Shown here one piece after another: positions 40,606-62,498 of a stretch of 64,000 bases of DNA; the first letter of the stretch is position 1, and the number at the start of each line of letters is the position of its first letter. Under the pieces are notes generated by a model. The model did no database searches, had not been told where the DNA came from, and worked only from the letters and a program-made list of their open reading frames with translations. The position numbers were made by a program, and so were the translations under genes. Where the stretch lies: positions 62,001-126,000 of IMG/VR virus record IMGVR_UViG_3300033388_007730; one strand, 5' to 3'.

Positions 40606-41493
40606 ATGGCTCATAAAATTTCATATCAACCAGGCAGTGTTCCTTTGAACAGAGTATGTTATGATTACAGAGACGACATAGCTTTTAGAATTTATGTTAT
40701 GATGAGTAATGATTGGGATTCTATGAAAAAGTGGAAAAGGTTGAAGCATAGTAGAAAATCAGAAAGACATGGAAGTTACAAGCCTAAATATCTCCAAGAT
40801 TTGCTTCAATTAGTTAAAGACACTCCTGTAGGGGATACTAAATTTGCTTGGAAAAAAGTTCCTAAAAAAGGTAAAATTTTAGATAGGGTTCATTTTGCAT
40901 TTGATAAAAAAACTGATATATATTATCCCGCTGGTGGAGGTAGTAGAGTAGCTATTGCATATTTTTTATGTCATTCTCATGTGCCAGCTTTATTGGTTTC
41001 GACTAAGGAAGGCTCGGCATGGGCAAAAAATTTTGGAGTAGGAACAAGGCATTTTAATGGTATGCCAGATGATATTATTAAAAAAATGTTGTTTAGAAGA
41101 GAAATTAATAATTTGTTTGTTGATGGTATATTGAAGAAAAAAATTAGCAGTGAGTTTCTTTACAAAATTCCAGATCTAGGATTTAGGGGTAAATTTGATG
41201 TAAATAACTTATTAAATGACAAAGAGTTATTAACCCAAATAAGAGGGAAAGAAGTACTTAATACAATACAGGATAATGGTTATTTAGAGGTCAGTATTTC
41301 CGAATACTGTTCATCTGTAACGACTGTAGGCGAATCTTCTCATAGAATTAAAATATCTAATAAGATATCTAACTATTATAAGAAGAGCAATATCAAACAT
41401 ATTAAAAATGTTCTATCATATTCAGAATATGATGTTATTTTGTCTAAAGGTAAAAATGGAAAAGTGTCATTAGATAATTGTAAAAAGGTTTAG
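40606..41493 (+). CDS. hypothetical protein with ParB/Srx-like motif
   Basis: AGGGSRVAIAYFL..HVPALLV. Confidence 0.4.
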   Translation: MAHKISYQPGSVPLNRVCYDYRDDIAFRIYVMMSNDWDSMKKWKRLKHSRKSERHGSYKPKYLQDLLQLVKDTPVGDTKFAWKKVPKKGKILDRVHFAFDKKTDIYYPAGGGSRVAIAYFLCHSHVPALLVSTKEGSAWAKNFGVGTRHFNGMPDDIIKKMLFRREINNLFVDGILKKKISSEFLYKIPDLGFRGKFDVNNLLNDKELLTQIRGKEVLNTIQDNGYLEVSISEYCSSVTTVGESSHRIKISNKISNYYKKSNIKHIKNVLSYSEYDVILSKGKNGKVSLDNCKKV

Positions 41494-41494
41494 G

Positions 41495-42256
41495 ATGAAT
41501 AATAAATTTACAATTTTAACAGCATCATCTAATAAGTATTTATATTTAAAAGACTGGATGGATTCTATTATTGCTCAAAAATATAGACCTTTAGAAGTTG
41601 TTATGGTGGATGATTGCTCTAGTGATGAAACTAAAAAATTCGTAAAAAGATTGAGAAAAAGATTTAAAGAAAATGATATAGAGTTTAAGTATTTGAGAAA
41701 TAATAATAGATTGCATTGTAGTAGCTCTTATAAAGTTGCTATAAAAAATGCGACAGGTGATTTTATGGGGGTATTAGATGCAGATGATATTTTAGTTAAT
41801 GATGCAGTAGAATATATTATGAGCAAATATAATGATCACGAAGATATAGCTTGGATATATACTCAGTTCGCAATTTATAATGTCAATATGAGGTATATAA
41901 AAGATGGGTGGTGCAGGATGCCAACAAAATGGGGATCTATGCTGGCTTCTGGAGAAAGAAGAAAAAGTATTTATTCTCATTGGAGGACTTTCTCGAAAAG
42001 ATGTAATGATTTAAATAATGTATTGCCTGAAGGACTCAAGTGTGCTGTTGATAAATACATGGGGTATAAATTAGAAGAACTTGGTAAAGGAATGTTTATT
42101 AACAGAGTATGTTACAAGTATAGGCAGGGTGTAAAGAGGGGCATAGTTTCAAAAGAAAGTACAAAAGCAACATGGAAGAAATTAGTTCAAGAGCTAGTTA
42201 TAGAGAGAAAAAAGAATGGTATAAAACCATATCCTATTATAGAAGGAGAAGCATGA
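41495..42256 (+). CDS. GT2 glycosyltransferase, paralog of the C-half of 36530
   Basis: QKYRPLEVV, VDDCSSD, LDADD, WIYTQF, HWRTFS. Confidence 0.85.
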   Translation: MNNKFTILTASSNKYLYLKDWMDSIIAQKYRPLEVVMVDDCSSDETKKFVKRLRKRFKENDIEFKYLRNNNRLHCSSSYKVAIKNATGDFMGVLDADDILVNDAVEYIMSKYNDHEDIAWIYTQFAIYNVNMRYIKDGWCRMPTKWGSMLASGERRKSIYSHWRTFSKRCNDLNNVLPEGLKCAVDKYMGYKLEELGKGMFINRVCYKYRQGVKRGIVSKESTKATWKKLVQELVIERKKNGIKPYPIIEGEA

Positions 42257-42933
42257 TGGAAAGAACAAAAAAACAATGGCATAGATATTTTGTTGAAGAA
42301 ATTTCTAATATAGTTGCTAGTCATGTTGATAAGGATAAAGATGTTTTTGTTGAATGTGGAGTTAAGCAGGGATCTTCTTCTGTTAGAATGGGAGTAAGGC
42401 TTGGTATAAGTGGATATTTATTTGATACTTGGCATGGTTTTCCGAATTTCTCTGATTTAGATGTTCATCATGATAAAGATAGGAAACGAATGGAGATGAG
42501 AATAAGAAACTCTAATAGTACTTATAGAGATTGTGTCAATGCTTTAAAGAAGCATGGATTATTTGAAATTTGTAGCATGGTTGAGGGTGATATTCTAAAA
42601 ACAGTCCCATCATTTATGGAGGATATTACAAATGATTTGTCTATTGCTATGATGCATATAGATACTGATTTGTATGAGCCTGCTAAGGTTTCTTTAGAAT
42701 CATTTTGGCCGCACGTTAAAGAAGGTGGAGTAGTTTATTTTCATGATTATGGAGATAAAAAATGGAGAGGTATTAAAAAGGTTGTCGATGATTTAGTAGA
42801 TAATGATGATGATTTATTATTTCATGTTTTTGATAAAAATAAATTATTTTCAGCAGTTATCATAAAAAACAGTAGTGTAATAAGCGAATCTATACTGCAT
42901 AGCATTGCTGAATTAGATACTAGAGTTAGATGA
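42253..42933 (+). CDS. TylF/MycF-type sugar O-methyltransferase
   Basis: VECGVKQGSS, FDTWHGFP, HIDTDLYEP, FHDYG. Confidence 0.85.
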   Translation: MMERTKKQWHRYFVEEISNIVASHVDKDKDVFVECGVKQGSSSVRMGVRLGISGYLFDTWHGFPNFSDLDVHHDKDRKRMEMRIRNSNSTYRDCVNALKKHGLFEICSMVEGDILKTVPSFMEDITNDLSIAMMHIDTDLYEPAKVSLESFWPHVKEGGVVYFHDYGDKKWRGIKKVVDDLVDNDDDLLFHVFDKNKLFSAVIIKNSSVISESILHSIAELDTRVR

Positions 42934-43736
42934 ATAGAAAAAAGATAGTGAAGAAGTTAAGAGGGCAGGAAGTTTTTATTATAACTCATATTCCCAAAAC
43001 TAGTGGGAGTTCTATAGGTCACATATTAAGGGAGTAGAAGTCTAATGTTTTCTGGCCGCACTATGAGAAGACAGATGATGCTCCTAAATATATATCAGGT
43101 CATATATGTTATGGCATTCATAAGTTATGGGGGCTTGATGAGAAAAAGGTAAAATATTTGGTTATCTTAAGAGATCCAATAAGAAGATGGAAGTCAATTT
43201 TTAATTATTCTTTAATGAGATATCATGAAGGAGCTATTCGAAAAGGTGTCCCTATTGAAACGTTTTATAATGATTGCGATGGTAATTTGGAGCGATTTTT
43301 AGATCGATGTATTAAACATGGTGTTAATCAAAATGTTATGACTAAAATTGTGTCAGGAGAAGAGGACGTTAATAATATAGAAGGTTATGAAAAGCACTAT
43401 AAGAAAAAAGGAAGATTGTATTTTAGCCAGGTTTCACAGACAGCATGGGGAGATAGATATGATTCTATATCTGATGATAAAATGGATATCATGTTGAATG
43501 TGGCTAAATCTAATTTGTTAGATAAGTATTATTTTGTTGGTTTTGTGGAAGATGAAAATAATCAGCAAAAAATGTGTGATGCATTAAAGTTGAAATTTAA
43601 TGGCAAAAACCTTGTCAAAAGAAAGTCATTGCAAAGAAAAGGGATTGATTGGGAAAATAGCAATATACACGACATGTTAGTTGAGTTGAATAAATATGAT
43701 ATTAAATTATATAATTTTGCAAAAGGATCACTATGA
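42930..43736 (+). pseudogene. sulfotransferase family protein with in-frame TAG at 43035
   Basis: PAPS-binding HIPKTSGSS upstream of the stop is in frame with SGH, LRDPIRRWKS and LNKYDIKLY. Confidence 0.75.
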
Positions 43737-45401: not shown

Positions 45402-45410
45402 GATTTTATT

Positions 45411-46499: not shown

Positions 46500-47036
46500 A
46501 TGTCATTAAAGTTGCATCTTGGTTGTGGTAATAAACATATTGAGGGTTATGTTAATATTGATATTAGACCAATGGAAGAAGTTGACAAGGTAGATAATAT
46601 AAAATATTTACGTTCTTTTAAAGAAAATAGTGTTGATGTTATTTATTCAGCGTCTGTCTTAGAACATTTTATAAGATGGGAATATAAAAACGCTTTAAGA
46701 AGGTGGTATGAAATATTGAAACCTGGAGGAGTATTAAGAGTTAGAGTTCCTGATTTTGAAGCTATTGTAAAATACTATCAAAAGACAAATGATATAGATG
46801 CAGTAATGGGACTATTGTATGGCGGTTAAGATTATGAGCAAAATTTTCATTATGTTTGTTGGGATTTTAAAAGAATGGAAAAAGATTTAAAAGAAGTCGG
46901 TTTTAAAGATATAAGAAGATACGATTGGAGAGAAACTGAGCATTCGGATATAGATGATTTTAGTCAATGCTACCTTCCTCATATGGATAAAGAAAATGGT
47001 ATGTTAATGCATCTTAATATTGAGGCAATTAAATAA
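46500..47036 (+). pseudogene. class I SAM methyltransferase with in-frame TAA at 46827
   Basis: LHLGCG, VLEHF, LKPGG.LRVRVPDF; frame continues LYGG*DYEQNFHY...YLPHMDKENG..LNIEAIK to a TAATG overlap. Confidence 0.75.
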
Positions 47037-48034
47037 TGAATATTCCTCCTGATAAGTTTAAAAATTTAATGGCTATTACAAAGAAAAATAAGTTGATAAG
47101 AATACCAAATAAAGTAATGAGAAAACAGAAATGGATAAAAGAACAGGATATTAGCTTAACTCCTAATTCTATTTGTATCGTTTGTAATTTTTCTTATTAT
47201 TATAAAGATAGAGGTTGGTCTAATAACGTAAAAGCAATTTGTCATCCTTTTAGAGAATATCAACAGTCAGTAAGAAATAGGAAGTTACATTTGTTTTCTG
47301 AATCAGATTATTGCGATACGATGTGGATGGAAGATATCTCGTTATTATCTGCTAAATCTAAGTACAAGTATGATTTCTTTTGTTATACTATAGATTCATC
47401 TCAAGGTGTAAGGTGTAAGGGATCATATTCTTTGCCATTAATTGCAGAAGTTGCTAAAGAGCTTGGGATGACAGGTTTAATATTAGATTATTATCCAAAA
47501 CGAAGACCTGCTTGTGATTCTGGTGAGGGGTGGGACATACTAGTTCAGGAAGTTAGAAAAGGTTTGCAAAAAGCTAATAATATAAAAATTCATAGAGGTC
47601 GTGTTAGCCAGAGTAAAATTAATCAATTAATGCAAGATTGTAAATTCGTCATTTTTCCTAATACTAGAGACGCTAGTCCGAGAACTATACCTGAAACTTT
47701 GTTAAGAGGAAAATCTATCATGGTTAATCAGAATATTCTTGGAGGGTGGAAATACGTTAATGATGTTAATGGTATTTTATATGATGGAGCGTTTAATGCG
47801 GAAGAGTTGAATAATAACAAATCATATTATCGAGAAAAGATTAAAGAAGCGTTAATAAAAATGAGTCAAAGAAAAGATAATTTCAAGAGTATAAAAAAAG
47901 ATTTTTTAAGTAAATATGGTTTTATTAATACCGCAAAAAGAATGGCATCTATTATTAATGAGATAGAAGGTCATAAGAAATATAAATATGTGGCATACAC
48001 TGATTTTAAGAGATATCTGGGAGTCATAAAATAG
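47036..48034 (+). CDS. GT-B fold glycosyltransferase-like protein
   Basis: FPNTRDASPRTIPETL...ILGGWKYV. Confidence 0.6.
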   Translation: MNIPPDKFKNLMAITKKNKLIRIPNKVMRKQKWIKEQDISLTPNSICIVCNFSYYYKDRGWSNNVKAICHPFREYQQSVRNRKLHLFSESDYCDTMWMEDISLLSAKSKYKYDFFCYTIDSSQGVRCKGSYSLPLIAEVAKELGMTGLILDYYPKRRPACDSGEGWDILVQEVRKGLQKANNIKIHRGRVSQSKINQLMQDCKFVIFPNTRDASPRTIPETLLRGKSIMVNQNILGGWKYVNDVNGILYDGAFNAEELNNNKSYYREKIKEALIKMSQRKDNFKSIKKDFLSKYGFINTAKRMASIINEIEGHKKYKYVAYTDFKRYLGVIK

Positions 48035-48043
48035 GAGATAATT

Positions 48044-48547
48044 ATGGGGAAAGGTTTTAATTGTTGTGATGAAATAATAGAATGGATTAAAAATAATATT
48101 CCTAAAGGAAGTACAATTTTAGAACTTGGTAGCGGGAAGGGGAGCACTCAGTATCTATGTGATGACTATGATCTCTATTCTATTGAGCATGAGAAAAGAT
48201 GGTTAAATAAATTTGATTCTACTTACATCTATGCTCCTATCAAAGATGGATTCTACAATACTGATATTCTGAAAAAAGAACTTCCAGAAGAATATGCCCT
48301 GATATTAGTTGATGGTCCTCCTAGAAAAATAGACGGGAAGAAGGTCGGCAGAAAAGGTTTCGGTGAGAACTTAGATTTGTTTAATACAAATTGTGTAATA
48401 ATGTTTGATGATAGTGACAGGGGGAGAGAGAAGAAATTGATAGCTTCTGTGTGCGAGCAGCTTGGAAGGGAAGTTGTCCAATATAAGGGTCACGACCATA
48501 GAGGTAAGGGAACTTATTTTGCAGTAATGGTTAAAGAAGAGGAGTAG
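48044..48547 (+). CDS. class I SAM methyltransferase
   Basis: ILELGSG, SIEH, LVDGPP, FDD. Confidence 0.75.
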   Translation: MGKGFNCCDEIIEWIKNNIPKGSTILELGSGKGSTQYLCDDYDLYSIEHEKRWLNKFDSTYIYAPIKDGFYNTDILKKELPEEYALILVDGPPRKIDGKKVGRKGFGENLDLFNTNCVIMFDDSDRGREKKLIASVCEQLGREVVQYKGHDHRGKGTYFAVMVKEEE

Positions 48548-48548
48548 A

Positions 48549-49355
48549 ATGGAATATAAATTAGAATTTAATGAGTTGTTTGATTTGTGTTCAAAAAAGA
48601 TAATGTCCAAAGTTCCAACAAAACCAGGTCCTGTAAAAGGAGCTTTCAATGGAGGAGATTATTTGGGTAGACCAGGGAAGGATGTTTTTTTCGCTCTTCC
48701 TGATTTAACTGATGAGCAGATGGAAAAATTAGCGGATGTACTTAGTGACCAATACCCATTTATATCTCCTAATAATCATGTTGGGTATGCTGGATGTATT
48801 CGTTATATATATGGGCAGTTTGAAAAACAAGGAATACTTAGATCAGATGAAGATTTGAAAAGAATGAAAAAAGAAGGTGTAGAATGGGATATTTCAAGAA
48901 AATTTATGCTAATTTTAAAAGATAAATTTCATGAGAAGAAAAATTATTATGGGTTATGTTTATATTATGAAATGGAAGCACATAGGTTAGGTGATGAGGG
49001 GTTCTTGAATAGAGATAAGGATAAGATAAAAGAGATGGAAAAGTATTATCAAGAATCAGTTAGATATGCCATAAAATGTAAAAGTATTAAGCAGATGTTC
49101 ACGCCATATTATTGGGCGTGTATGTATTTTGCAAAGCTTAAAGATCATGAAAAGGGAGAGTACTATGGTGAAAAAACAATGATACAAATGGATCAATTTT
49201 GTCCAAGTGCTAAACAAGGATATTTAGTTAAGGCTGTTGATACTGCTAAGTATTTGAAAAAATCACATCCTTCGAGCTGGAAACCATTGAGAAATTGGCT
49301 TGTTCAGAATAGTGAAAATGATTGTATCAGAAAAATGTTAAAGAAAGTGAAATAA
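48549..49355 (+). CDS. helical (TPR-like) hypothetical protein
   Basis: 268-aa ORF with helical-repeat character. Confidence 0.45.
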   Translation: MEYKLEFNELFDLCSKKIMSKVPTKPGPVKGAFNGGDYLGRPGKDVFFALPDLTDEQMEKLADVLSDQYPFISPNNHVGYAGCIRYIYGQFEKQGILRSDEDLKRMKKEGVEWDISRKFMLILKDKFHEKKNYYGLCLYYEMEAHRLGDEGFLNRDKDKIKEMEKYYQESVRYAIKCKSIKQMFTPYYWACMYFAKLKDHEKGEYYGEKTMIQMDQFCPSAKQGYLVKAVDTAKYLKKSHPSSWKPLRNWLVQNSENDCIRKMLKKVK

Positions 49356-49357: not shown

Positions 49358-49969
49358 ATGGAAAGATTCAATATAGATAAAAATATGAAAGATGAACTTA
49401 TAAAGAATACTCATTTCGGTAGAGTTAAAAATCAACCTTATCAAACTATTGGAGAGTTACATGGTTCCAGAGATATGAAGTATAGGTATGAATTTATGGG
49501 TTTGCCCAAGAGCATGGAAGGAAAAACTATTCTAGATATAGGTTGTAATATGGGGATGATTTGCATGGAGTCTAAAAATAGAGGAGCATCTAGAGTGGTT
49601 GGTATAGATTATAATGGGAAAATTATTAATACAGCAAAAAAGTTTTTTAAAGAAAATAATTGCGATGGTGAATTGTATCAATTTAATGTTAACGATGGGC
49701 TTCAAGCTCTTCAAAAGTTAATAGGAGATGATCAGTTCGATTATGTTTTTGCTCTTGCTATATGGGGCACTGTTAAAAAGTTTATTCTATGGAGTATGAT
49801 TAATTATTATTGTACAGACATATGTTGGATGGAAGGACATAATAAAGAAAAGGGCAAAGAAGAAAAGATAAAGAAAGAATTAACTGAAAATTTGATATTT
49901 TCTGATTTATCTTTTTTAGGCAATACTAAAGATAGGGGTATCAGACCCACATTTAGAATGGTAAAGTAA
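49358..49969 (+). CDS. class I SAM methyltransferase
   Basis: GKTILDIGCNMG, VVGID, FDYVF. Confidence 0.8.
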   Translation: MERFNIDKNMKDELIKNTHFGRVKNQPYQTIGELHGSRDMKYRYEFMGLPKSMEGKTILDIGCNMGMICMESKNRGASRVVGIDYNGKIINTAKKFFKENNCDGELYQFNVNDGLQALQKLIGDDQFDYVFALAIWGTVKKFILWSMINYYCTDICWMEGHNKEKGKEEKIKKELTENLIFSDLSFLGNTKDRGIRPTFRMVK

Positions 49970-50610
49970 TGAAAAATTATGATCTAAATCTTACTTCAAA
50001 TAAATATTATAGGGACAGGAAGCATGTAGTGAAAGATTTCGCTAATGTTCTGCCTATAGATTTTAACGGGGAAATTTATAATGGAGATAGGAACAATAAT
50101 AATTATGTAAAAGGAAGATTTTCGTTATTTTTAAAGCCTATTATCGGGGATAAGGGATATAAAATTTTCGTAGGATTTAGAGATAAAGATAGAAAAGATG
50201 ATTTCGTTAAAGCGTTTTCTGAAGACGATATTTTAGTTATTAAAAAAGTTTACGATATTTTGAGTAAGTATGACTTGTGTCCAAAAGTTTATAGTATTTT
50301 CTCAGTCAATGTTAACGTGTATGGATGTTCGTATACTTCTTATGGATTAGAAATGCAGAATATAATAAAAAATGGGAAAGGTTCTAAAAGTCAATTTAAA
50401 GATTTTAAGAGTAAATTGAAAAGAGCTTGTGAAGCAAATGGATTGAAGAGGCTTGATAGGAGAGATAGGAGGACTATACTTCAAGGAGGAGAGGTATCGG
50501 GGTCAATAGAGAATATCATGTATGAGTCATCTATTAAAGCAGATAATGTTGTTTTTGATGGGAAGAATTATATATTATTGGATATAGATCCAATGTGGGT
50601 GATGTTATGA
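49969..50610 (+). CDS. kinase-like fold protein (possible sugar kinase)
   Basis: GYKIF, LCPKVY, GLEM, IKADNV, LLDID; degenerate motifs. Confidence 0.4.
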   Translation: MKNYDLNLTSNKYYRDRKHVVKDFANVLPIDFNGEIYNGDRNNNNYVKGRFSLFLKPIIGDKGYKIFVGFRDKDRKDDFVKAFSEDDILVIKKVYDILSKYDLCPKVYSIFSVNVNVYGCSYTSYGLEMQNIIKNGKGSKSQFKDFKSKLKRACEANGLKRLDRRDRRTILQGGEVSGSIENIMYESSIKADNVVFDGKNYILLDIDPMWVML

Positions 50611-51512
50611 AAATATGTATCTCTGAAGACATAAATAGAGTTGATTCCGGTAAGCATAAATTTCTGAACAGATTATCTACAGAGTTAAAAAAGAGTGGTT
50701 GTGAGTTCGTAGATAATGATGCTGATATATTGCTTCATATAGGAAGAAATATAACTGGGAAAAGAGCGAAAAAGATTATAATGAGGGTTGATGGTTTAAT
50801 ACTTAATAAATCCCAGCCCTATGAGAAAAATAATAGGAAGATATTAAAATATATTAATAAAAGTGATGCTGTTATTTATCAAGGTGATTTTTGCAAGCAA
50901 GCATATGAAAAATTCCTAGGGGTTAATAAGAAGAATATATGCATCAATAACGGAGCAGATCCTTCAGAGTTCTTAAAAAGAGATGTGAAGAATTATTTTT
51001 TTACTTATTGTAGATGGAGACCTCATAAGAGGCATAGAAATATATGTGAAGGTTTTGCGAAGTCTGTAGAGAGGGGGCTAGATTCGGTTCTTTATATAGG
51101 AGGCGAGGTAGATCAGAAAGAAAGAATAGATCATCCTAAGATAAACTATTTGGGGTGGATGCCTCTTGATGAGATAAAAGCATGTCTGGGTCATGCTATA
51201 GCTACTATTCATTTATCATGGTTAGATTGGTGTCCTAATTCTATGGTCGAATCAATTACGGCAGGATGTCCTATTATATACTCTGATTCGGGAGGATCTA
51301 AAGAGATAGGCAAATTTGGAGGTATTTCTATTCGTGATACGCAGTGGGATTTTACTCCCACGTTTTTATATGATCCTCCATGGATTAACTCAAATACTAT
51401 AGCTGATGCTTTGATTAAGATAAAAGGTAAAAAAATCAATGTGAATAGAGAAGCATTAAACATTAAAAAAATTTCAGAAGAGTATCTTAATTTTTTCAGA
51501 AAGGTTTTATAG
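50607..51512 (+). CDS. GT4 glycosyltransferase, paralog of 43733
   Basis: MRVDG, INNGAD, DWCPNSMVESITAG. Confidence 0.8.
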   Translation: MKICISEDINRVDSGKHKFLNRLSTELKKSGCEFVDNDADILLHIGRNITGKRAKKIIMRVDGLILNKSQPYEKNNRKILKYINKSDAVIYQGDFCKQAYEKFLGVNKKNICINNGADPSEFLKRDVKNYFFTYCRWRPHKRHRNICEGFAKSVERGLDSVLYIGGEVDQKERIDHPKINYLGWMPLDEIKACLGHAIATIHLSWLDWCPNSMVESITAGCPIIYSDSGGSKEIGKFGGISIRDTQWDFTPTFLYDPPWINSNTIADALIKIKGKKINVNREALNIKKISEEYLNFFRKVL

Positions 51513-51991
51513 TGTCAAAAATTATTACAATATCAACAAGTGATTTGTTTTTTCCGTATCTAGAGTACTTGGAACATTTTTATCAAAATTATTGGAGAAA
51601 AGATGGTAATTATTTATGGTTCGGAAATCATCCTCTTGCCCAATTTGCAGAGGACTATATTAAATATGGCAAAAAAGTTTTAGACGATTTAGATAATCAT
51701 ATATTTATTAAATATGAGTACGATAGATACTCCGAGTCTCCTACTGTTATTAATGATACTCACAAATATAAAGCTTCTCAAAGAATAATGACTATGGTTG
51801 ATTCTATTAGAAAATATGGCTACTGTCAGAATAAGTATGATAAATCAAAATATTTGATAAGGGTATTTAGAGCTACTGACTATAGATATATTCCAGGAAA
51901 AGAAGTTTATGTTTTAAAGAGTAGAAAACATAGGGCATCAGCTTGTTGTAGCTTGGGGATAAAAGAAATTAAAGTGAAGGTTATAAATTAA
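51512..51991 (+). CDS. ParB/Srx-like protein
   Basis: VDSIRKYGY...SRKHRASAC.SLGIKEIKV. Confidence 0.45.
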   Translation: MSKIITISTSDLFFPYLEYLEHFYQNYWRKDGNYLWFGNHPLAQFAEDYIKYGKKVLDDLDNHIFIKYEYDRYSESPTVINDTHKYKASQRIMTMVDSIRKYGYCQNKYDKSKYLIRVFRATDYRYIPGKEVYVLKSRKHRASACCSLGIKEIKVKVIN

Positions 51992-52635
51992 TGAAAAAGA
52001 GAACATTAATAACTGTTCTGACTTGGAATAGATTAAATCTTACTAGAGATACTATTAAGTCATTGTATAAACATAACACTGATGATTTTGATTTATTATT
52101 TATAGACAATGGATCAACAGATGGGACTATTGAGTATCTGGAGAAAAGATACGAAGTGATAAAAAACAAAACAAATGAGGGTATTTTCAATGCTTCTGTA
52201 AAGGTGTGGAAAGAAGGAGTTAAGAGAGGATATGATTTTATTCTCAATCTACAGAATGATTTTCCATGTGTTCGTAAAATACCTTTTAAAGAGTTGGAAG
52301 CATATATGGATAAGAATAAGAATGTTTGTTACATAAGATTGAATAAAAAGAAGGACAAAAAAATTAACTTAGTAACTAAAAAACCGATTAGATATGGAGT
52401 TCCAGAACTATTAGGAAATTATAATATAAAGAAGTGTAATTATCACATTGGTTTTAATCCCGCATTAATTAGATCATCTATTATTGATGAATTTTCTAAT
52501 TATGATGGAGATAATCCTAGAGAGAGAATTCTTATGAATAATTTTGAAAGAATTGGTAAACAATGTGCTAAGTTATTTCCTGATGTTTTTGATACTCTTA
52601 AACAGGGAAGCCATAAAGGAGATTGGAAACATTAA
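51991..52635 (+). CDS. GT2 glycosyltransferase
   Basis: LTWNR, IDNGSTDGT, LQND. Confidence 0.8.
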   Translation: MKKRTLITVLTWNRLNLTRDTIKSLYKHNTDDFDLLFIDNGSTDGTIEYLEKRYEVIKNKTNEGIFNASVKVWKEGVKRGYDFILNLQNDFPCVRKIPFKELEAYMDKNKNVCYIRLNKKKDKKINLVTKKPIRYGVPELLGNYNIKKCNYHIGFNPALIRSSIIDEFSNYDGDNPRERILMNNFERIGKQCAKLFPDVFDTLKQGSHKGDWKH

Positions 52636-52682: not shown

Positions 52683-53423
52683 ATGAGTCTTATATCAGAA
52701 CAAGAGATGAAAGATCTAAAAAAATCTAATACAGTTGTTATATGGGGCTGTGGCTCTTCTCTTAACGATTTTCCAGATTGGAGTTTTGATAATTTGAAAA
52801 AATTTGACAGTATTTCTTTCAATTGGTTCTGTTTCTCTTGTCACTCAATTACTTATTATTTAGTTAGGGAACAGGCTAATTTAGAAAAAAGAACTAACGG
52901 AGAGGAAAACATAGATAACTTTTATGATATAATGAATTATTCTTATATAAATAGTTGTTTAGTCGTGCATGACCTGTCATTACATTCTCCACATGCATAT
53001 GATTATTCTTCAGAAAAAAATATAGCAAAATTTAATAGCAAGTATGTAGTGGTAAAAGATACTAAGTTGAAAGATAATGATCCAGGTGTTAAATTGTGGA
53101 GAGATAAAAGTATTTTTAAAAGTGGGATATATCATGGAAAAACAACTTTGACAAATGCTTTGCATCTTGCTGTGTGGCTGGGATATAAGAAAATAATTTT
53201 TGCGGGAGTTGATTTATATGATTCAAGATACTTTTGGTTGAATAACAATGATACGAGATATTCTGTTTCTGATAAGAAGAAAGACAGAACTGCTAAACAT
53301 GCCACAGTTAGTGCTGTAATGAAATTAGTAAAAGATGTAAAGAAGTATTATCCAAAAATAAAGATGTATACCTATAATCCTAAGTCATTATTAAAAAATG
53401 TTATTCCGGTGTGGAAGAAATGA
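52683..53423 (+). CDS. Maf/sialyltransferase-fold protein
   Basis: VVIWGCGSSL, ISFN, ALHLAVWLGYKKIIFAGVD. Confidence 0.65.
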   Translation: MSLISEQEMKDLKKSNTVVIWGCGSSLNDFPDWSFDNLKKFDSISFNWFCFSCHSITYYLVREQANLEKRTNGEENIDNFYDIMNYSYINSCLVVHDLSLHSPHAYDYSSEKNIAKFNSKYVVVKDTKLKDNDPGVKLWRDKSIFKSGIYHGKTTLTNALHLAVWLGYKKIIFAGVDLYDSRYFWLNNNDTRYSVSDKKKDRTAKHATVSAVMKLVKDVKKYYPKIKMYTYNPKSLLKNVIPVWKK

Positions 53424-54292
53424 AAAGCATATTATGTGTAACTGACAAGAAGGGTTGGTGTTTGTATAATATTATGAACATCTTAAAGGGATATATGCCT
53501 CAATATAACATAGATGTAATATCTTTGAAAGATAAATTCAAACCTGATAAATATGATTTGGTCTATTATACTCACTTTGCTCTGTATAAAAAAAGATCAT
53601 ATAGCGGTAAAAAAATAGCAACTGTAACAAGTCATAAATGTCTCAATGATATGAAAAAAACTCTCAAGATACTGAGAGAGTTTGATGCTGTATCTGTCAA
53701 TAGTATGATATTGCATGATATATTCAAAGATCATATCAAAAATCTATCTTACACTCCAAGCGGAGTTGATACAAAAAATTTTAGATTTAAGGATAAAACT
53801 AGAAATGATAAAATAGTTTTAGGTTGGGTTGGTAACAGAGATAGAAGTGTTAAAAATTATGACACTATATTCAAACCTCTGAAGAAGGTTATTCGACATG
53901 TAGAGTTTAAGGAAATAGCTACAAGAAAAGGAGATACTCATAAAAAGTTTCTTAACGCTAAGGGAATGGCTGAGTTCTACCATCAGTTAGACTTTTTTAT
54001 CATAACAAGTGATGCTGAGGGGACACCAAATCCTGGCTTGGAAGCTATGTCTTGTGGTGTTCCAATCATATCTACTAGAGTGGGCAATATGGTGGAGATA
54101 GTGGAGGATAAAGTTGACGGATTCTTTTGTGACAATGATATAAGGTCATTCGCTAAGAGGATAGAGAGAGAAAAAAGTATCTCTCATAATGATTATTACC
54201 TAATGAGCAGTAATATCAGAATTAAGATGGTTGAGTGGGATTGGTCGATAATATATAAGAAGTATGAAGATTTTTTTGGAAGTGTAATTTAG
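53420..54292 (+). CDS. GT4 glycosyltransferase
   Basis: SGVDT, GWVGN, EGTPNPGLEAMSCGVPIISTRVG. Confidence 0.85.
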   Translation: MKSILCVTDKKGWCLYNIMNILKGYMPQYNIDVISLKDKFKPDKYDLVYYTHFALYKKRSYSGKKIATVTSHKCLNDMKKTLKILREFDAVSVNSMILHDIFKDHIKNLSYTPSGVDTKNFRFKDKTRNDKIVLGWVGNRDRSVKNYDTIFKPLKKVIRHVEFKEIATRKGDTHKKFLNAKGMAEFYHQLDFFIITSDAEGTPNPGLEAMSCGVPIISTRVGNMVEIVEDKVDGFFCDNDIRSFAKRIEREKSISHNDYYLMSSNIRIKMVEWDWSIIYKKYEDFFGSVI

Positions 54293-54789
54293 TGAGAATT
54301 AAGATACCAGCGATAGGGATCCCACATTATTGGTGGAATAAGAGGGCGTGTAAATATGCTAAGAAATATCCTAATTTAGTTAAGATGGCTGTGTCAGATT
54401 TAGTATTTGGATGTAATCCTCATATTAACTTTTTAAAATATATAGACGATCTTTCAAAAAATGTTAAGGAATCAGAATATTGGGAATACCAGAAGAGGAA
54501 TAAAAAAGAAGAAGTAATTTGGAATAAAATAAAAAAATATAAACAAACTTATAGAAGCATTAAAGATAATGGATTCAATGCTTTAGGTGATAAATATAAT
54601 TCTTCTATTATTGTGACAGATGATGGGTGTAGATTAGATGGGTCTCATAGAGTAGCTATATTGTTTCATCTGGGTATTTTAGAAGTTGATGTTAATGTGG
54701 TAGTTTATGAAAAAGTTTTTTCAAAAAAAGAATCTGAAAAGATTAGAAAAGAAAATTTAGAATATCGAAAAGAGACATATGGATTGTGA
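54292..54789 (+). CDS. ParB/Srx-like protein
   Basis: YRSIKDNGF...IIV...LDGSHRVAIL..LG. Confidence 0.6.
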   Translation: MRIKIPAIGIPHYWWNKRACKYAKKYPNLVKMAVSDLVFGCNPHINFLKYIDDLSKNVKESEYWEYQKRNKKEEVIWNKIKKYKQTYRSIKDNGFNALGDKYNSSIIVTDDGCRLDGSHRVAILFHLGILEVDVNVVVYEKVFSKKESEKIRKENLEYRKETYGL

Positions 54790-55528
54790 AATAGAAAAGA
54801 AAATATTGATATCTGTTTTAATGACATCGAGAAATAGGTTTAATATGTTGTATAAAAATTGCAAGCAGATGTTTTCTTTAGCTGCTAATTCAGAAAATAT
54901 AGAATTAATTTTATATATTGATAGAGATGACTATGAGACTATTTCTATTTATGAAAAAATGAGAAATGAGAATAGTAATGTTAGGGCTATAATAGGAAAA
55001 AAATTATCGCATTATGGTCATGCTTATAACATATTATGTAAAGAAGCAGGTGGAGATATATATTTTTTTATAGCAGATGATTGTTTGATTAGCAATGAAA
55101 ATTGGGACGAAATTGTTTTGAATGAATTTAATAAAGTAAATGATAAAATATTATTAGTTTACGGGGATGATGGTAATCAAGGTAAAAAAACTGCGACAAT
55201 TGGTTTTGTTCACAAAAACTGGGTAGAAACGATAGGATATTTATTTCCTTTAGATATGATGGTTAAGGTTGGGGATAGCTGGTTAACAAAAGTTGCTCGA
55301 ATTATAGGAAGAGATGTTTTTATAGATGACTTAAAAATTAAACATCTTATAGAAGAAACAAAAAGAAATCCTGTTAAAGATGAGGAGTGGAATAAGAATA
55401 GAGATATTCGTAAAAAAATTAAAAAGTTATTTAGAGAAAGTAAAAAAGTAAAAAATTTGATAAATATGGATGCTATTAAATTGGAACAATTTATAGAAAA
55501 AAATAAAAAAGGAAGCAAAAATGAGTAA
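54779..55528 (+). CDS. GT2-like glycosyltransferase
   Basis: ISVLMTSRNR, YIDRDD, IADD, VYGDD. Confidence 0.7.
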   Translation: MDCEIEKKILISVLMTSRNRFNMLYKNCKQMFSLAANSENIELILYIDRDDYETISIYEKMRNENSNVRAIIGKKLSHYGHAYNILCKEAGGDIYFFIADDCLISNENWDEIVLNEFNKVNDKILLVYGDDGNQGKKTATIGFVHKNWVETIGYLFPLDMMVKVGDSWLTKVARIIGRDVFIDDLKIKHLIEETKRNPVKDEEWNKNRDIRKKIKKLFRESKKVKNLINMDAIKLEQFIEKNKKGSKNE

Positions 55529-57192: not shown

Positions 57193-57194
57193 TT

Positions 57195-57899
57195 TTGGGA
57201 ATAACACTTAATAAATATAATTGTTGCGATTTCGGGAAAGTTGATAGTATAGGAGTTCTATGCAGAGGAAAATCTCTTGGTAGCATAGGTAAATATAAAG
57301 AGAATTTTAAAAATATTTTTCTTGTTGGACAACATTATAGATCTCTTAAATTAATAGGTGAGCATATAGATGGTAGCAACATAGTAAAAATTTGGGGCAG
57401 TACTTTTAATAAACCTAGCAATGGTTATAAGAAACAATATGCAAAATATAATATAAGAGATATGCAAACATATCTTGATCCAAATTTGAGTGATCGTAAA
57501 GCATATAAGTTTAAAAAGATTACAAAAACAAATCATGGTTTGTTAGAAGTCTTTCCAAAACCTACTGATTTTAATGAAAGAAATAAAAGGTTTATTTTAA
57601 AGAGAGATCACAGAAGAGGAGAGAGACTTCATCATCCAACAATAGGGTTATTTGCTGTGGATATGGCTTGTGCTTACAAGCCTAAGCAGGTGAATATAAT
57701 TGGACTGGATTTTTATTGTGCTTCTGATTTTGTAGAAGAAAAGAGACATATTAGTACAAAGAAGAATTTTTGTAGAGGACCTTCGATGATAGAATATTTT
57801 GTATTACTTTGTAAGGAAGAGCCAGATATTCAATTTAATTTGTATACATGCTGTAGGAAAATTAAATCTAACAGAAATTTAAATATTATAAGAGTATAG
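57195..57899 (+). CDS. sialyltransferase-like (GT29/Maf fold) protein
   Basis: IGVLCRGKSL, PTIGLFA, VNIIGLDFY. Confidence 0.5.
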   Translation: MGITLNKYNCCDFGKVDSIGVLCRGKSLGSIGKYKENFKNIFLVGQHYRSLKLIGEHIDGSNIVKIWGSTFNKPSNGYKKQYAKYNIRDMQTYLDPNLSDRKAYKFKKITKTNHGLLEVFPKPTDFNERNKRFILKRDHRRGERLHHPTIGLFAVDMACAYKPKQVNIIGLDFYCASDFVEEKRHISTKKNFCRGPSMIEYFVLLCKEEPDIQFNLYTCCRKIKSNRNLNIIRV

Positions 57900-57900
57900 C

Positions 57901-58329: not shown

Positions 58330-58996
58330 TATGATAGATCTTAGAGGAACGATAGAAGTTTTTATTATAACTAATGGACGTTCTACTTATAAATATTGTA
58401 AAAAGTCTGTTGATAACCAGAAGGAAGTAAAGTTTGAAACTATTGTTATTCAGGACATGGGATGGCAGGAGGCTCATGAGGAGATCCTTAATACTTGCAA
58501 ATCCAAATTCGTATTAAGAGTAGATGATGATATGTTATTGCATCCTATGGCTTTAAAATTTATGTATCAATGTGTTAAAAAACAAAAGGATAATATAGCG
58601 TTGAGAGGTTGGAGACTATGGGAGCCATGGAGTAATAAAGTTTGTAAGGGGATAAAAGTTTATAACGTTAAGATAGCTAAAAAAATAGGATTTAAATTAG
58701 ATCATCTTGGCAAAATTGATAAGCCATTTACTAAGAATGCCGAAAAAGCAGGTTATAAAATAAAATATACTAGGGATGTAGTTGCTATTCATTCATGTGG
58801 GGATTTTAGTGAGCATTTAAAATATTGGGAGATGAGGGGAGAGGCAAAAAATGGGAAATTTACTAAAAAGAAGATATGGGCAGAGGGGTTGATAAGGTCT
58901 TGCACAATGAATCTTCAAGAACAGTGTGATCTTAATAAAAAATTTATTAGAGATTATAATATAAAGAAAGGAACTGATTTTGGTAAGTTCATCTAA
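58319..58996 (+). CDS. GT-A fold glycosyltransferase-like protein
   Basis: RVDDDMLLHP (DXD motif). Confidence 0.6.
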   Translation: MKNSMIDLRGTIEVFIITNGRSTYKYCKKSVDNQKEVKFETIVIQDMGWQEAHEEILNTCKSKFVLRVDDDMLLHPMALKFMYQCVKKQKDNIALRGWRLWEPWSNKVCKGIKVYNVKIAKKIGFKLDHLGKIDKPFTKNAEKAGYKIKYTRDVVAIHSCGDFSEHLKYWEMRGEAKNGKFTKKKIWAEGLIRSCTMNLQEQCDLNKKFIRDYNIKKGTDFGKFI

Positions 58997-59888
58997 AAAA
59001 ATATTATTCACTATTTTGACCTGTAATAGATTCCACTATTTTAAAAATTGTATAGAGTCTATTATCCAGTGTGTTGATATGAATCGTATTGATATACTAA
59101 TTATGGATAATAATACGATAGAGAAAGGATTTGATGAATATGTTCACAGTTTGTGTGAGAAGTATGGCAACATTATGGTGAAGAAGTTTATAGATCGGAC
59201 AAGAGGTGAGTTGTACAGGGCTATGAATTGGGCTATCGACTACGCTAAGACGAATAGTTATGAGATTATAGACTTTATTCAGGATGATCGACAATATCTA
59301 TATAAGAAGGAAGATCATTTGGACGATATTTTTGATATATTTAACAATTATAGCAATATAGTTCAGATCAATTGCAATCTAGCTTGGCGTAGAAAAATAA
59401 AAGGTATTGGTAAAGTTAAAAATATAAGTATTAATAAAAGTAAGTACGGTATTTTATTAGACAAAAGAGCGTGTGATAATGGATTTACGAGGGTATCTAT
59501 TTATGATCAGATAGGAGAATATCCTACAGATGCTATAAGTTGGGGCATGGAAAAGAATAGATATGTTGGGAAAATTAATGGAGAGATATGGTTCGGTAGA
59601 AGATGTCAGAAAAGAGGGTATAGCAGAGCGTTAGCTTACCAAGCCAATATGGGTATGATTTTTGATTGTGCTTATGTTAGGGGAGAGGAAAGGTATGGCG
59701 ACTACTTCCCTTCTTCAGGGGAGTTTTATTTTAAAATGCTCGATAATATACATATAGATAAAATTAAAAAAAGAGCTAAGAAAAACAAATTTTCTTATAT
59801 GGAAGATTTTTGTATTCCAGATGGATGGACTCCTAAAACCTATGGCAAACATGGTGATATAAATATAAGGAAAAAGATAGATGGGTAA
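58980..59888 (+). CDS. GT2-like glycosyltransferase
   Basis: LTCNRFHYFKNCIESI, MDNN, AMNWA, IQDD. Confidence 0.7.
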   Translation: MVSSSKKILFTILTCNRFHYFKNCIESIIQCVDMNRIDILIMDNNTIEKGFDEYVHSLCEKYGNIMVKKFIDRTRGELYRAMNWAIDYAKTNSYEIIDFIQDDRQYLYKKEDHLDDIFDIFNNYSNIVQINCNLAWRRKIKGIGKVKNISINKSKYGILLDKRACDNGFTRVSIYDQIGEYPTDAISWGMEKNRYVGKINGEIWFGRRCQKRGYSRALAYQANMGMIFDCAYVRGEERYGDYFPSSGEFYFKMLDNIHIDKIKKRAKKNKFSYMEDFCIPDGWTPKTYGKHGDINIRKKIDG

Positions 59889-60702
59889 ATATTATTATTT
59901 CACAGCCGCTTCGGGTGAGAAATTTATTAATAAATATACGAAGTATTCTGTCAAGTCATTAATTAAAGCTGGGATATCTCTTGACGATATACATTTGGCT
60001 GTTAATACAAAAAAAGATAGAAAACTGGTGAAGCAAGTTTTGCCAGAAATAATAAATATATATCTTATCAAAGAGGATCTTAGTACTGTAGTTTGGAAAT
60101 ATTCTAAGGGTAAAAGAAAATACTCTTTGTTTAAAAGTGCTGCTTTGTATAGATCTTTTCCTAAACCTATTGAAGGTAGGTATATGATTTATTTTGATGG
60201 AGATGTTTTGTGGTATAAAGATCCTGCTCCGTTTTTTGATACTAAGTGTGAAAAGACTTGGTTTCATCACGGCAAGTCCTTAAGAGAAAGATGTCCAGCA
60301 GGAAAAGCGGGCAGGACAGTAGATCAGATAGATGTAACTAGTTATGAAGATCTTTCTCAATGGGTTAGTGACCCTCAAGCTCATTTAATGGTTAAATTCG
60401 GAGCTAAGGTAGTGCCAGAGTATGAGGCTGTTGCAGGATTATATTTGCTTCATCCAAGAGATCATGAAGCATTCTTAGAAATGACTTACAAGGGTTGTCT
60501 TGAAAATGCCGATAAATTTAGAGGTCATGAAGGTGGTGGAGATCAAAAACCGACTAATGCATCTTTAAGTATTCTTGAGATAGACTGGCATGGAGGGTCT
60601 CGTTTCTTCTGTCCTGAGCATACAAAGTATTTTGATCATTATTTTGGTAAAGATGATATGAAACAGAAATTTTGGAATAGAGCTAGAAAGTTAGGATTAT
60701 AA
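59881..60702 (+). CDS. GT-A (GT8-like) nucleotide-sugar transferase
   Basis: IYFDGDVLW, AGLY, GDQ. Confidence 0.6.
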   Translation: MGKYYYFTAASGEKFINKYTKYSVKSLIKAGISLDDIHLAVNTKKDRKLVKQVLPEIINIYLIKEDLSTVVWKYSKGKRKYSLFKSAALYRSFPKPIEGRYMIYFDGDVLWYKDPAPFFDTKCEKTWFHHGKSLRERCPAGKAGRTVDQIDVTSYEDLSQWVSDPQAHLMVKFGAKVVPEYEAVAGLYLLHPRDHEAFLEMTYKGCLENADKFRGHEGGGDQKPTNASLSILEIDWHGGSRFFCPEHTKYFDHYFGKDDMKQKFWNRARKLGL

Positions 60703-60703
60703 T

Positions 60704-61342
60704 ATGGATATTAATGAGATTCAAGAAGGTATTAAAAATAAGCACTGGTATTACTATTATAATTTTGATGGTGTAGAAGTTAATAAAAAGAAGAAGAAAG
60801 ATAAAACGCTAGGTATGTATAATTGGGATAGAATCAGACCAGTCATAAAAGAAATTTTTGCTAAGGTTGAGAATCCTCATGTGTTGAATGTAGGATGTAA
60901 TATGGGACTGTATGATCATGAGATGACGAAGATGGGAGCAAAAGTTACGGCTATTGATATTAATACTGATAATATCGAGTTTTATAGAAGATTTGTAGTT
61001 GAAAATAAACAGGAGGATTGGTGTGTCGATGTTAGAAAAATAGATATAACTAAAGAGAGGTTGAAAGATGATTCTATCAACATTATTTTAATGTGTTGTG
61101 TGATATATCATTTAGATCTTTATCAAAATATGGTTATTAAAAATTTAATAGAAGATTGTCCTAATCATAAATTCTTAATTTTACAGGGTAATTTACCAAG
61201 AGTAACAAAAAAGAATCAGACAGAAGCTGGAGTTAATGGTATGAGAAATATTTTGAAGAATAATTCTTATTCTGTTCCAGAAGATTATATTTATGAGTGG
61301 GAAGGATATCAAAAGCCTGTAGTTATAGGAGAAAGAAAATGA
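60704..61342 (+). CDS. class I SAM methyltransferase
   Basis: VLNVGCNMG, VTAID, VIYHL. Confidence 0.75.
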   Translation: MDINEIQEGIKNKHWYYYYNFDGVEVNKKKKKDKTLGMYNWDRIRPVIKEIFAKVENPHVLNVGCNMGLYDHEMTKMGAKVTAIDINTDNIEFYRRFVVENKQEDWCVDVRKIDITKERLKDDSINIILMCCVIYHLDLYQNMVIKNLIEDCPNHKFLILQGNLPRVTKKNQTEAGVNGMRNILKNNSYSVPEDYIYEWEGYQKPVVIGERK

Positions 61343-61938
61343 AAAACAAGAAAAAGAAGTATGGGAAGTGGACTCCAGGACATGAATTAAAATATTGGAA
61401 TAAAAATGGGATACGTGTAGGAACAGATATCTATGATAGATATGCTAAAGCTTTTAAAATGGATCAATATAATTTTGAGGGAAAATTAGTTGCAGATATT
61501 GGATGTGGTCCATTTGGGGGAGTATTTTATAATGATATGAAAGAAAATATATTTCCCATAGATATCTTGGCAGATGATTATAATAAGATGGGTAATTGTG
61601 ATAAAAAAATCATTATGGGAGATCTCTACAGGGGTTTATCGTTTGAAGATAATTATTTTGATTATGTGATATGTACTAATGCTATAGATCATATCCCAGA
61701 TGTCCAATCAGGTTTTAATGAAATTTTCAGAATTCTTAAGTGTGGAGGTATTTCATTTATACATGTCCATTTAAGAAGAGAAGATCAATTAAGTAAAGCT
61801 CATATTCACTCTTTGAGATTAGAGACTGTGAAAAAGATGTGTGAGGAGTTTGAAAGCATATCTATCGTAGAAGATATCGATTGGGTTAATAACATACCAG
61901 ATAGACAGACAGCTTATTTAACTTTGAGAAAGAATTAA
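61339..61938 (+). CDS. methyltransferase type 11
   Basis: ADIGCGP, FDYVICTNAIDH, EIFRILKCGG. Confidence 0.82.
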   Translation: MKNKKKKYGKWTPGHELKYWNKNGIRVGTDIYDRYAKAFKMDQYNFEGKLVADIGCGPFGGVFYNDMKENIFPIDILADDYNKMGNCDKKIIMGDLYRGLSFEDNYFDYVICTNAIDHIPDVQSGFNEIFRILKCGGISFIHVHLRREDQLSKAHIHSLRLETVKKMCEEFESISIVEDIDWVNNIPDRQTAYLTLRKN

Positions 61939-61943
61939 TTTTT

Positions 61944-62498
61944 ATGTTAAAAATAGACATGTATCTTAAAAGATATGGTTTGAAAATTGAAGAAATTAAA
62001 AAAGTAGATTTAACAAAAGTCTATTACCAATATAGACCTGGTGTCGATTATGATAGAATTCTTACTAACTCTCCTCACTTTGAATTAGCTCAACATTACT
62101 ATAATAAGGGATTGAAATGGTTGAATGCAAATTTTAAAAATACAAAATATTTTATATTTCAAAAAGATATACTAAAAATCACTCCCTACGTTCCTGTGAA
62201 GAAAATGAGGTTGTTTGACTCTTTAAAAAAGGGTTATTTAGGGAAGGGATATGAGAATGACCGTATAGTTATTTTAAATGATCCATTTATTTGTACTAGA
62301 TATGCATTAAATTTGTCACTGCCTTCTCCAGAGGTTTTTATGGGGCATCATAGAGCAGGAGCGATGTTGGCTTTAGGGCAAAAAAATGTAGAAGTTATTG
62401 TGGCTGTTGACGATATGATAGGAACTAAGAATTGTTATGGTAGACTCCATGATATTTATAGTTTGGAGAAGGTTCAAAAAATGAGGTATAACTTATGA
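61944..62498 (+). CDS. ParB/Srx-like protein
   Basis: LFDSLKKGY...EVFMGHHRAGAMLALG..VEV. Confidence 0.55.
   Translation: MLKIDMYLKRYGLKIEEIKKVDLTKVYYQYRPGVDYDRILTNSPHFELAQHYYNKGLKWLNANFKNTKYFIFQKDILKITPYVPVKKMRLFDSLKKGYLGKGYENDRIVILNDPFICTRYALNLSLPSPEVFMGHHRAGAMLALGQKNVEVIVAVDDMIGTKNCYGRLHDIYSLEKVQKMRYNL

Follow-up and report, generated by a model that had tools for sequence, protein, structure and literature searches.

In a virus record from IMG/VR (IMGVR_UViG_3300033388_007730; 219,188 bp), we analysed a window of 64,000 nucleotides, record bases 62,001-126,000, and found three short plus-strand genes, starting at window positions 51512, 54292 and 61944, whose products share a very divergent ParB/sulfiredoxin (Srx) fold and which lie inside a large glycan biosynthesis locus. 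By sequence comparison these genes are paralogues within one family, and we hold it highly probable that this ParB/Srx family is functionally dedicated to glycan biosynthesis loci. As the best overall explanation we propose, with somewhat less than even confidence, that this glycan-locus family adds a nucleotide-dependent phosphotransfer step.

The best-supported ParB/Srx-fold protein of the three is the product of 54292 (P3; 54292..54789, 165 residues), which has a Box I-like SIKDNGF motif at 54556-54576 and a Box II block, DGSHRVAIL, at 54637-54663. The corresponding motifs of 61944 (P4; 61944..62498, 184 residues) are SLKKGY at 62220-62237 and MGHHRAGAM at 62340-62366, the latter without an Asp before the Gly, and those of 51512 (P2; 51512..51991, 159 residues), the most divergent of the three, are SIRKYGY at 51803-51823 and SRKHRASAC at 51920-51946, in which Arg replaces the Gly of GxHR. 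An earlier note on this DNA, made from the sequence alone, had singled out these open reading frames (ORFs) and their peptides along with a fourth, 40606, and a check of the sequence found all four exactly as described, with the upstream S(I/L)..G(Y/F) motif located in 51512, 54292 and 61944. The GxHR-like motif through which the note had grouped them is a different matter: the peptides are present, but the bare G-x-H-R pattern has 4 occurrences among the record's 81,693 ORF residues where composition predicts 3.6, so that the motif alone proves nothing and it is homology that makes the observation real.

That homology is seen by several routes. BLASTP pairs 51512 with 61944 at E = 1e-5 and with 54292 at E = 0.009, Jackhmmer links 51512 with 61944, and, among the 413 ORFs of the record, the top-ranking matches of a 54292-family profile other than to itself are 61944 (E = 0.0035) and 51512 (E = 0.081). 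In a leave-out test, the three window proteins and all sequences at least 30% identical to the target were removed from a 125-sequence alignment and the profile was rebuilt; it recovered 54292 at E = 7e-37, 61944 at E = 2e-18 and 51512 at E = 1.5e-10, and these three are the only family members in the 219-kb record. An exhaustive profile search extended the family to 384 cluster representatives at E ≤ 0.001 (89 at E ≤ 1e-10), defining as a family several hundred sequence clusters that lack annotation in any family library. A word-based search returned about 12 close relatives per gene and no Pfam domain in any of them; for the four proteins, scans against Pfam, NCBIfam, PHROGs and PADLOC gave no family assignment, and tblastn of 54292 against the INPHARED phage collection gave no match. 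The family is rare in cellular genomes, with one strong match in 401 genomes of one phylum. Separately, 54292 weakly matches the PADLOC model PD-T4-10_B (E = 6e-4, residues 27-127); this model, from a candidate defence system, probably represents a ParB-like domain too.

Structure prediction followed by Foldseek, the check suggested in the earlier note, returned the ParB/Srx fold for 54292. The AlphaFold2 model, built with 11 homologs, has a predicted local distance difference test score (pLDDT) of 92.4 and a predicted template modelling (TM) score (pTM) of 0.86, and four structure libraries place it with ParB/Srx proteins, at modest scores. About 35 of the 40 PDB matches listed have this fold (best E = 0.09), including pNOB8 ParB-N, Noc, ParB-CTP, SerK, SbnI, Srx, PadC, Atu1540 and Spo0J; in BFVD most named matches are called 'ParB/Sulfiredoxin', 'ParB protein' or 'ParB-like nuclease' (best E = 0.003); and the best ESM Atlas match (TM 0.64 over 127 residues) bears the automatic name 'ParB/Sulfiredoxin domain-containing protein'. 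The model contains the elements of the core fold, a Box I helix and loop, beta strands, and Box II followed by a helix and a strand, together with an N-terminal helical extension specific to the family and a single C-terminal helix, which is absent from 51512. The claim that the proteins carry no ParB helix-turn-helix (HTH) agrees with what we find: there is no HTH match, the proteins are only 159-184 residues long, and the 54292 model has one helix after the core.

Profile searches lead to the same fold. With the 125-sequence profile, seven PDB sequences match at E ≤ 10, all of them free-serine-kinase-type ParB/Srx proteins (1vk1, E = 0.004; SbnI, 0.03-0.12; SerK, 0.05), in alignments that all centre on the DG(H/V)HR..LG..V block, and SerK and SbnI, to which the earlier note had pointed, are thus the closest solved relatives by sequence. 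The same profile matches a genuine PF02195+HTH protein in a bacterial genome at E = 6e-7, and 54292 alone matches the N-terminal part of phrog_498 (E = 1e-5), a PHROG annotated 'DNA methyltransferase' whose N-terminal region we take to be the ParB domain of ParB-methyltransferase fusions. Searches of PDB sequences by phmmer and small profiles, using 54292, its 11-member family and the 40606 family, found nothing meaningful. We regard the ParB/Srx assignment as sound for a family that is very divergent; it extends to 51512 and 61944 through their family membership.

Across the 125 sequences (54292 numbering), H119 and R120 are present in 100%, G117 in 98%, Y63 in 97%, T/S61 in 90%, H44 in 86% and G94 in 81%. 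The near-invariant H44, T/S61 and Y63 are carried by the N-terminal helical extension, and further conserved parts are the Box I-like K..F..LY.SIK..G(Y/F) helix and loop and, after the motif, the A..LG..V helix and strand. The family's G-x-H-R, which reads GSHR in 54292, GHHR in 61944 and RKHR in 51512 (Arg kept, Gly lost), corresponds to GxxR, the P-motif in Box II of the ParB fold. In ParB CTPases this is the phosphate motif, and R-to-A mutants lose binding of nucleoside triphosphate (NTP) (PMC12704722). Conservation of this motif suggests that the family probably binds nucleotide.

The position of the genes among glycosyltransferases, remarked on in the earlier note, is borne out by Pfam annotation of their neighbours, all on the plus strand. 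Directly upstream of 51512 lies a family 4 glycosyltransferase (GT4) gene (50595..51512; Glycos_transf_1) and directly downstream, with a TAATG overlap, a family 2 (GT2) gene (51991..52635; Glycos_transf_2). Likewise 54292 directly follows a GT4 gene (53411..54292; Glyco_trans_1_4 / Glycos_transf_1), and its 3' end is overlapped by 11 bases by a GT2 gene (54779..55528; Glycos_transf_2). Both GT4 junctions in the window, 50595 to 51512 and 53411 to 54292, are one-base TAGTG stop/start overlaps. Two methyltransferases precede 61944, the one directly upstream being a class-I S-adenosylmethionine (SAM) methyltransferase (61297..61938; Methyltransf_11), and the stop of 61944 overlaps the dehydratase gene 62495 (ATGA).

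These arrangements recur among homologs. The GT4-then-member order of 54292 repeats in a related 386-kb phage contig (L002) and in a Nitrospirota metagenome-assembled genome (L009), and the methyltransferase-then-member order in contigs L004 and L005. On L002 one member stands between two GT4 genes and a second (P0034) directly after NeuB; the two paralogues of that contig (L002:6283-6933 and L002:10001-10489) are 37% identical to each other. On a 34-kb contig (L004) and a 327-kb contig, a 61944-like gene is flanked by a methyltransferase and a B12-radical-SAM gene, the position of the 61944 homolog P0023, and a 54292-like gene precedes a GT4 gene. The L009 member overlaps an upstream Glyco_trans_1_2 gene and precedes a GT4 gene, with genes for FkbH, MBOAT, an ABC exporter, a B12-radical-SAM protein and an MptE-like protein nearby. 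A contig labelled Patescibacteria (L008) has a domain-methyltransferase fusion overlapping a Glyco_trans_1_2 gene; a sugar dehydratase and an aminotransferase belong to the same locus. Five further contigs hold GT4, methyltransferase, MptE-like, PMT, YfhO and rhamnose-pathway genes, L015 also a phosphonate-type phosphoenolpyruvate (PEP)-mutase/cytidylyltransferase; for two more distant relatives (L012 and L013), the overlapping gene is a methyltransferase in one case and a GT11 in the other. L015 additionally offers a side observation: P0172 (L015:7001-7750; a cluster of 23 sequences) sits between the YfhO gene and a phosphonate cassette consisting of a cytidylyltransferase+PEP-mutase fusion, a thiamine pyrophosphate (TPP) decarboxylase, an iron-dependent alcohol dehydrogenase (Fe-ADH) and a sulfatase-family transferase, a placement that connects the family with glycan decorations containing phosphorus.

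Four fusion proteins mirror these gene adjacencies. In P0126 a GT4 domain is followed by the family domain, in P0116 and P0154 the family domain is followed by a SAM methyltransferase (Methyltransf_11/25-type domains being among those fused), and in P0147 a B12-binding radical SAM domain precedes the family domain. The earlier note had allowed that homologs might prove not to be enriched near glycosyltransferases; in about a dozen contigs, a sample and not a formal enrichment test, homologs from distant lineages consistently lie amid genes for glycosyltransferases and sugar tailoring, with a GT4 or methyltransferase gene as neighbour wherever the context was usable, and some are even fused to such enzymes.

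The fourth candidate, 40606 (P1; 40606..41493, plus strand, 295 residues), was not confirmed as a member; at most it is a remote relative, for which we see about even odds. Its own family is a separate one of five members, all with YYPxGGGxRVxxAY, and its peptide GGGSRVAIA (40933-40959) includes a Box II-like GGSR with Ser where the main family has an invariant His. HMMER comparison with the main family gives E values of 0.03-0.06, at the border of noise, and aligns only R114 and the next helix and strand; an AlphaFold2 model from the five-sequence alignment failed (pLDDT 36.7). With hhalign, the 40606 family aligns co-linearly over residues 8-135 with the whole domain when compared with the 125-sequence alignment (probability 61%, E = 8e-5) and reaches 0.7% probability against a 16-sequence alignment, and Atlas searches give weak ParB_N leads in the same region (residues 8-135). 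The N-terminal domain of 40606 (residues 8-135) may therefore be a very divergent ParB/Srx-like domain, judging by these alignments. Its C-terminal extension of about 160 residues has no assignment; an 'SSHR' there, paired by BLAST with DGSHR, was set aside since 40606's own family does not conserve it. In the related 386-kb phage, the member that directly follows NeuB (P0034) occupies the same position as 40606 in the window. Of the earlier proposal as a whole, three of the four genes, the fold and the link to glycans have stood up; 40606 as a fourth member and the bare motif have not.

How might such proteins act? In the mechanism that we favour, Box II would bind a nucleoside triphosphate (ATP or CTP), and the family protein would act together with the enzyme encoded alongside it, a GT4, a SAM methyltransferase or a B12-radical-SAM protein, perhaps in physical contact with it. 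Phosphate would then be passed to a sugar, a sugar precursor or the growing glycan, as SerK and SbnI pass it to free serine and Srx to a sulfinic acid, and phosphorylation would be an extra tailoring step on the phage's complex, nonulosonic-acid-containing glycan. Analogy with these enzymes leads us to suggest, with slightly less than even confidence, that the family may be a phosphotransferase rather than a non-catalytic partner. A bolder version, in which we place less trust, would have a ParB/Srx-fold enzyme class that phosphorylates sugars, or activates them in a nucleotide-dependent manner, during surface or virion glycan assembly, with one paralogue per glycosyltransferase, methyltransferase or radical-SAM step.

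Several observations weigh against phosphotransfer, and a good part of them would suit a protein of another kind: a non-catalytic partner module, that is, a subunit that binds a nucleotide or a nucleotide sugar and activates, scaffolds or gates the enzyme next to it with no transfer of phosphate, its nucleotide site being a switch or vestigial. We consider such a role less likely than phosphotransfer, yet its main and a serious rival. It is a real alternative to a kinase because a phage ParB-like protein acts as a non-catalytic activator: ParB176 is the cognate-specific activator of a neighbouring T-dioxygenase (5mYOX) and, a precedent that by analogy may count against catalysis here, still activates it when NTP-site residues are mutated (PMC13229309). 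Characterised ParB-fold proteins are, moreover, mostly NTP-dependent switches and not transferases (PMC12704722). The fusion of one domain to three unrelated enzyme classes, and the placement of three paralogues each beside a different enzyme, with overlaps of the kind seen in translational coupling, fit a generic partner module equally well. The Asp of DGxHR is not conserved: 54292 keeps it, as does 44% of the family, 61944 and 51512 lack it, and 51512 has also lost the Gly of GxHR; in SbnI this Asp is needed for kinase activity. The two-domain architecture of SerK and SbnI, with its C-terminal substrate-binding domain, is missing from the window proteins at their 159-184 residues, and the VIA structural alignment of 54292 with SerK covers 90-97 residues only, scattered between residues 11 and 216 of the SerK chain. 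None of the four proteins matches PF02195 (ParB_N; gathering cut-off 26.3 bits); of the 125 family members one does (E = 0.0066), and the fusion protein P0116 reaches 20.8 bits (E = 4e-4), below that cut-off. To these points may be added that some of the contigs in the neighbourhood sample are phylogenetically related. The predicted complex of the GT4 at 53411 with 54292 scored 0.00, a result that counts neither way.

Other evidence speaks against a partner module. H119, R120, Y63, H44 and T/S61 persist over 125 sequences that are mostly less than 30% identical to 54292, and invariant polar residues of this kind resemble an active or ligand site more than they do an interface. Kinases, and not switches, are the nearest solved sequences. 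Glycan loci often join two catalytic domains, as in the GT4+GT2 protein at 36512 and a GT2+methyltransferase protein in L015, so that fusion need not mean a non-catalytic role; and the complex prediction lent the partner module no support, though it is not evidence against binding.

A second alternative takes the proteins to be directed at DNA, as a nuclease, a homing-endonuclease-like insert or the targeting subunit of a DNA-hypermodification system, with the 'glycan' enzymes modifying phage DNA. Phage ParB-like domains are mostly tied to DNA methyltransferases and to hypermodification clusters that hold glycosyltransferases and kinases (PMC12704722; PMC13229309), and the weak matches of 54292 to phrog_498 and PD-T4-10_B, the abundance of homing endonucleases and inteins in the genome, and an Endonuclease_7 domain in the relative P0087 would be in keeping with such a role. 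The loci themselves tell otherwise, holding NeuB, CMP-sugar synthetases, GDP-mannose dehydratase, TylF-type O-methyltransferases and MptE/Maf-like transferases as well as ABC exporters, PMT, YfhO and MBOAT, which are machinery of surface glycans and protein glycosylation. The fused methyltransferases are of the small-molecule Methyltransf_11/25 type and not N6_N4 DNA methyltransferases, no HTH or other DNA-binding domain was found, and members occupy conserved positions in a bacterial chromosomal locus (L009), unlike mobile homing genes. The glycan machinery, the methyltransferase type and the lack of a DNA-binding domain together make a DNA-directed role very unlikely.

Finally, that the ParB/Srx resemblance is nothing but a common small alpha/beta arrangement with a short motif, in a protein unrelated in fold and function, might be argued from a six-frame PF02195 search that finds nothing in the whole record even at E ≤ 10 and from the chance frequency of bare GxHR, but is scarcely credible when the top matches in four independent structure libraries are nearly all ParB/Srx proteins, sequence profiles lead independently to SerK/SbnI in the PDB and to nothing else there at E ≤ 10, as well as to a true PF02195 protein, and the invariant residues fall exactly on Box II GxxR and then on a conserved helix and strand.

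The setting of the three genes is a single uninterrupted glycan locus that, by Pfam annotation, runs from 36.5 kb to the end of the window (36512-64000 and beyond, at least 27 kb; about 98.5-135 kb in record coordinates); a GT2 paralogue at record 134,653-135,354 suggests that it continues beyond the window. It starts on the plus strand with a GT4+GT2 fusion protein (36512-38449), a CMP-sugar cytidylyltransferase (38449-39129) and, directly upstream of 40606, a NeuB-family nonulosonic-acid synthase with a C-terminal cupin-like extension (39132..40598; NeuB, SAF, Cupin_2), and in total it holds at least 12 GT2 and GT4 genes and at least eight SAM methyltransferases, one of them TylF-like. The NeuB extension, cupin- or lyxose-isomerase-like with PF07385 and PF07883 matches at residues 384-450, is unusual; the NeuB proteins of the related phage are shorter, at 263-328 residues. 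Between the 51512 and 54292 modules lies an MptE-like (Maf-type) gene (52683..53423, plus strand; PF01973 at E = 2.7e-7, under the cut-off), whose product is, by that match, possibly a nonulosonic-acid transferase; MptE-like genes were found repeatedly in the loci of homologs. The GDP-mannose-4,6-dehydratase-like gene after 61944 (62495..64000, plus strand; GDP_Man_Dehyd, LAGLIDADG_3) carries a LAGLIDADG intein and runs off the window. Seven ORFs of the locus, in the stretches 43158-43736, 47036-49355, 49969-50610, 57195-57899 and 59881-60702 (plus strand), have no Pfam match at E ≤ 0.01 and are taken as more unannotated parts of the same pathway.

Upstream of this main locus, the sole sizeable minus-strand gene of the window (31178-32020) is NeuB-like, with 26% identity to the NeuB at 39132, and a plus-strand ORF at 27879-28652 resembles CMP-sugar cytidylyltransferase (24% identity); we read the pair as a separate second set of nonulosonic- or ulosonic-acid genes. 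A second NeuB or a duplicate glycan locus elsewhere in the record had been suspected and was not borne out. CheckV puts the completeness of the record at about 44%, which makes it a fragment of a huge phage. The window has 30% GC and strong positive GC skew, with nearly all genes on the plus strand; tRNA and Rfam scans of it gave no match. Its first half holds phage replication and recombination genes (Pfam, PHROGs): a family-B DNA polymerase in pieces, a UvsX-like recombinase, a Cas4-like exonuclease, a UvrD helicase with an intein, and homing endonucleases. The intein of the UvrD-type helicase (16969-19962, plus strand) is marked by an Intein_splicing match over residues 263-609. The polymerase appears split over plus-strand ORFs at 4666-6066 and 6674-7723 (and also the unscanned 7752-9152), with positions 40-435 and 439-556 of the 1190-position phrog_405 profile falling into different ORFs; this suggests that mobile elements, for example an intron, intein or homing endonuclease, interrupt it.

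DNA segregation clamps, sulfiredoxin and two serine kinases are the established examples of the ParB/Srx fold, whose wider repertoire is an active question. The fold, the small-molecule kinases within it and ParB-fold fusions to SAM methyltransferases were already known, and some relatives of the present proteins are automatically named 'ParB/Sulfiredoxin domain-containing protein', so that the fold had been noticed by automated annotation; what is new here is its functional association with glycan loci. A December 2025 survey, which searched with PF02195 at the gathering cut-off, described many orphan fusions and nothing related to glycans (PMC12704722), as it relied on a Pfam model whose cut-off this family never reaches and would not have sampled it. 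Literature searches on ParB-like or sulfiredoxin proteins with glycosyltransferases or polysaccharides, and one recent huge-phage preprint, gave no sign of such a family. Conservation of the phosphate motif, with consistent coupling to GT4, methyltransferase and radical-SAM enzymes, suggests that a step or a subunit of glycan biosynthesis has been missed. If phosphotransfer is borne out, the ParB/Srx fold would gain its first carbohydrate-directed activity and the glycans encoded by phages a new tailoring chemistry. The family has members in huge phages and in a scatter of bacterial lineages, and better annotation of polysaccharide and protein-glycosylation loci would follow; the locus described here, at least 27 kb long, is one more sign that huge phages bring along very large glycan factories.

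Known systems for comparison include the ParB-methyltransferase fusions, reported in the December 2025 survey and in some cases ATP-binding (PMC12704722), and the phage ParB-5mYOX pair (PMC13229309): in both, as in the present family, a ParB-fold module is coupled to a modifying enzyme by fusion or adjacency in phages. They differ in being PF02195-positive and in having been interpreted as DNA- or RNA-directed, and neither study reports an association with glycosyltransferases, radical SAM proteins or glycan loci (PMC12704722; PMC13229309). The CTP-dependent DNA clamps ParB, Noc and KorB (PF02195) share the N-terminal nucleotide-binding fold, the Box I helix and loop and the Box II GxxR; the present family lacks their HTH, C-terminal dimerisation domain and GERRxRA box and lies outside any partition or plasmid context. 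Sulfiredoxin (7lj1, 6ky4, 2rii, 3hy2, 1yzs) offers a single-domain ParB-fold ATP-dependent phosphotransferase with a motif of the G-x-H-R type (GCHR), whose catalytic Cys is replaced by Ser in 54292, His in 61944 and Lys in 51512; it is eukaryotic or cyanobacterial, has peroxiredoxin sulfinic acid as its substrate and is unconnected with glycans. A parallel in function comes from the WbdD-type O-antigen terminators, in which a kinase and a SAM methyltransferase in a glycan locus provide a phosphate or methylphosphate decoration. The P0116 and P0154 fusions and the methyltransferase-then-61944 order resemble this combination as a functional analogy only, the WbdD kinase fold being protein-kinase-like and not ParB/Srx, with no homology claimed.

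The closest comparison is with the free serine kinases SerK (Thermococcus kodakarensis, 5x0b/e/j; Pyrococcus furiosus, 1vk1) and SbnI (Staphylococcus; 5uje, 5ujd, 6nr6). These have two domains and about 240-255 residues, with E30 as the catalytic Glu in SerK, and serve cysteine or siderophore biosynthesis, whereas the present family has about 160-240 residues with an N-terminal extension of its own (H44, T/S61, Y63), stands in glycan assembly and keeps the motif Asp in only 44% of its members. Common to all of them is a ParB/Srx fold without HTH; the D-G-x-H-R block, leading into the A..LG..V helix and a strand, is present in 54292 as DGSHR and aligns there to 1vk1, SerK and SbnI. SerK and SbnI themselves act on small-molecule substrates with a nucleotide as phosphate donor, from inside biosynthetic gene clusters.

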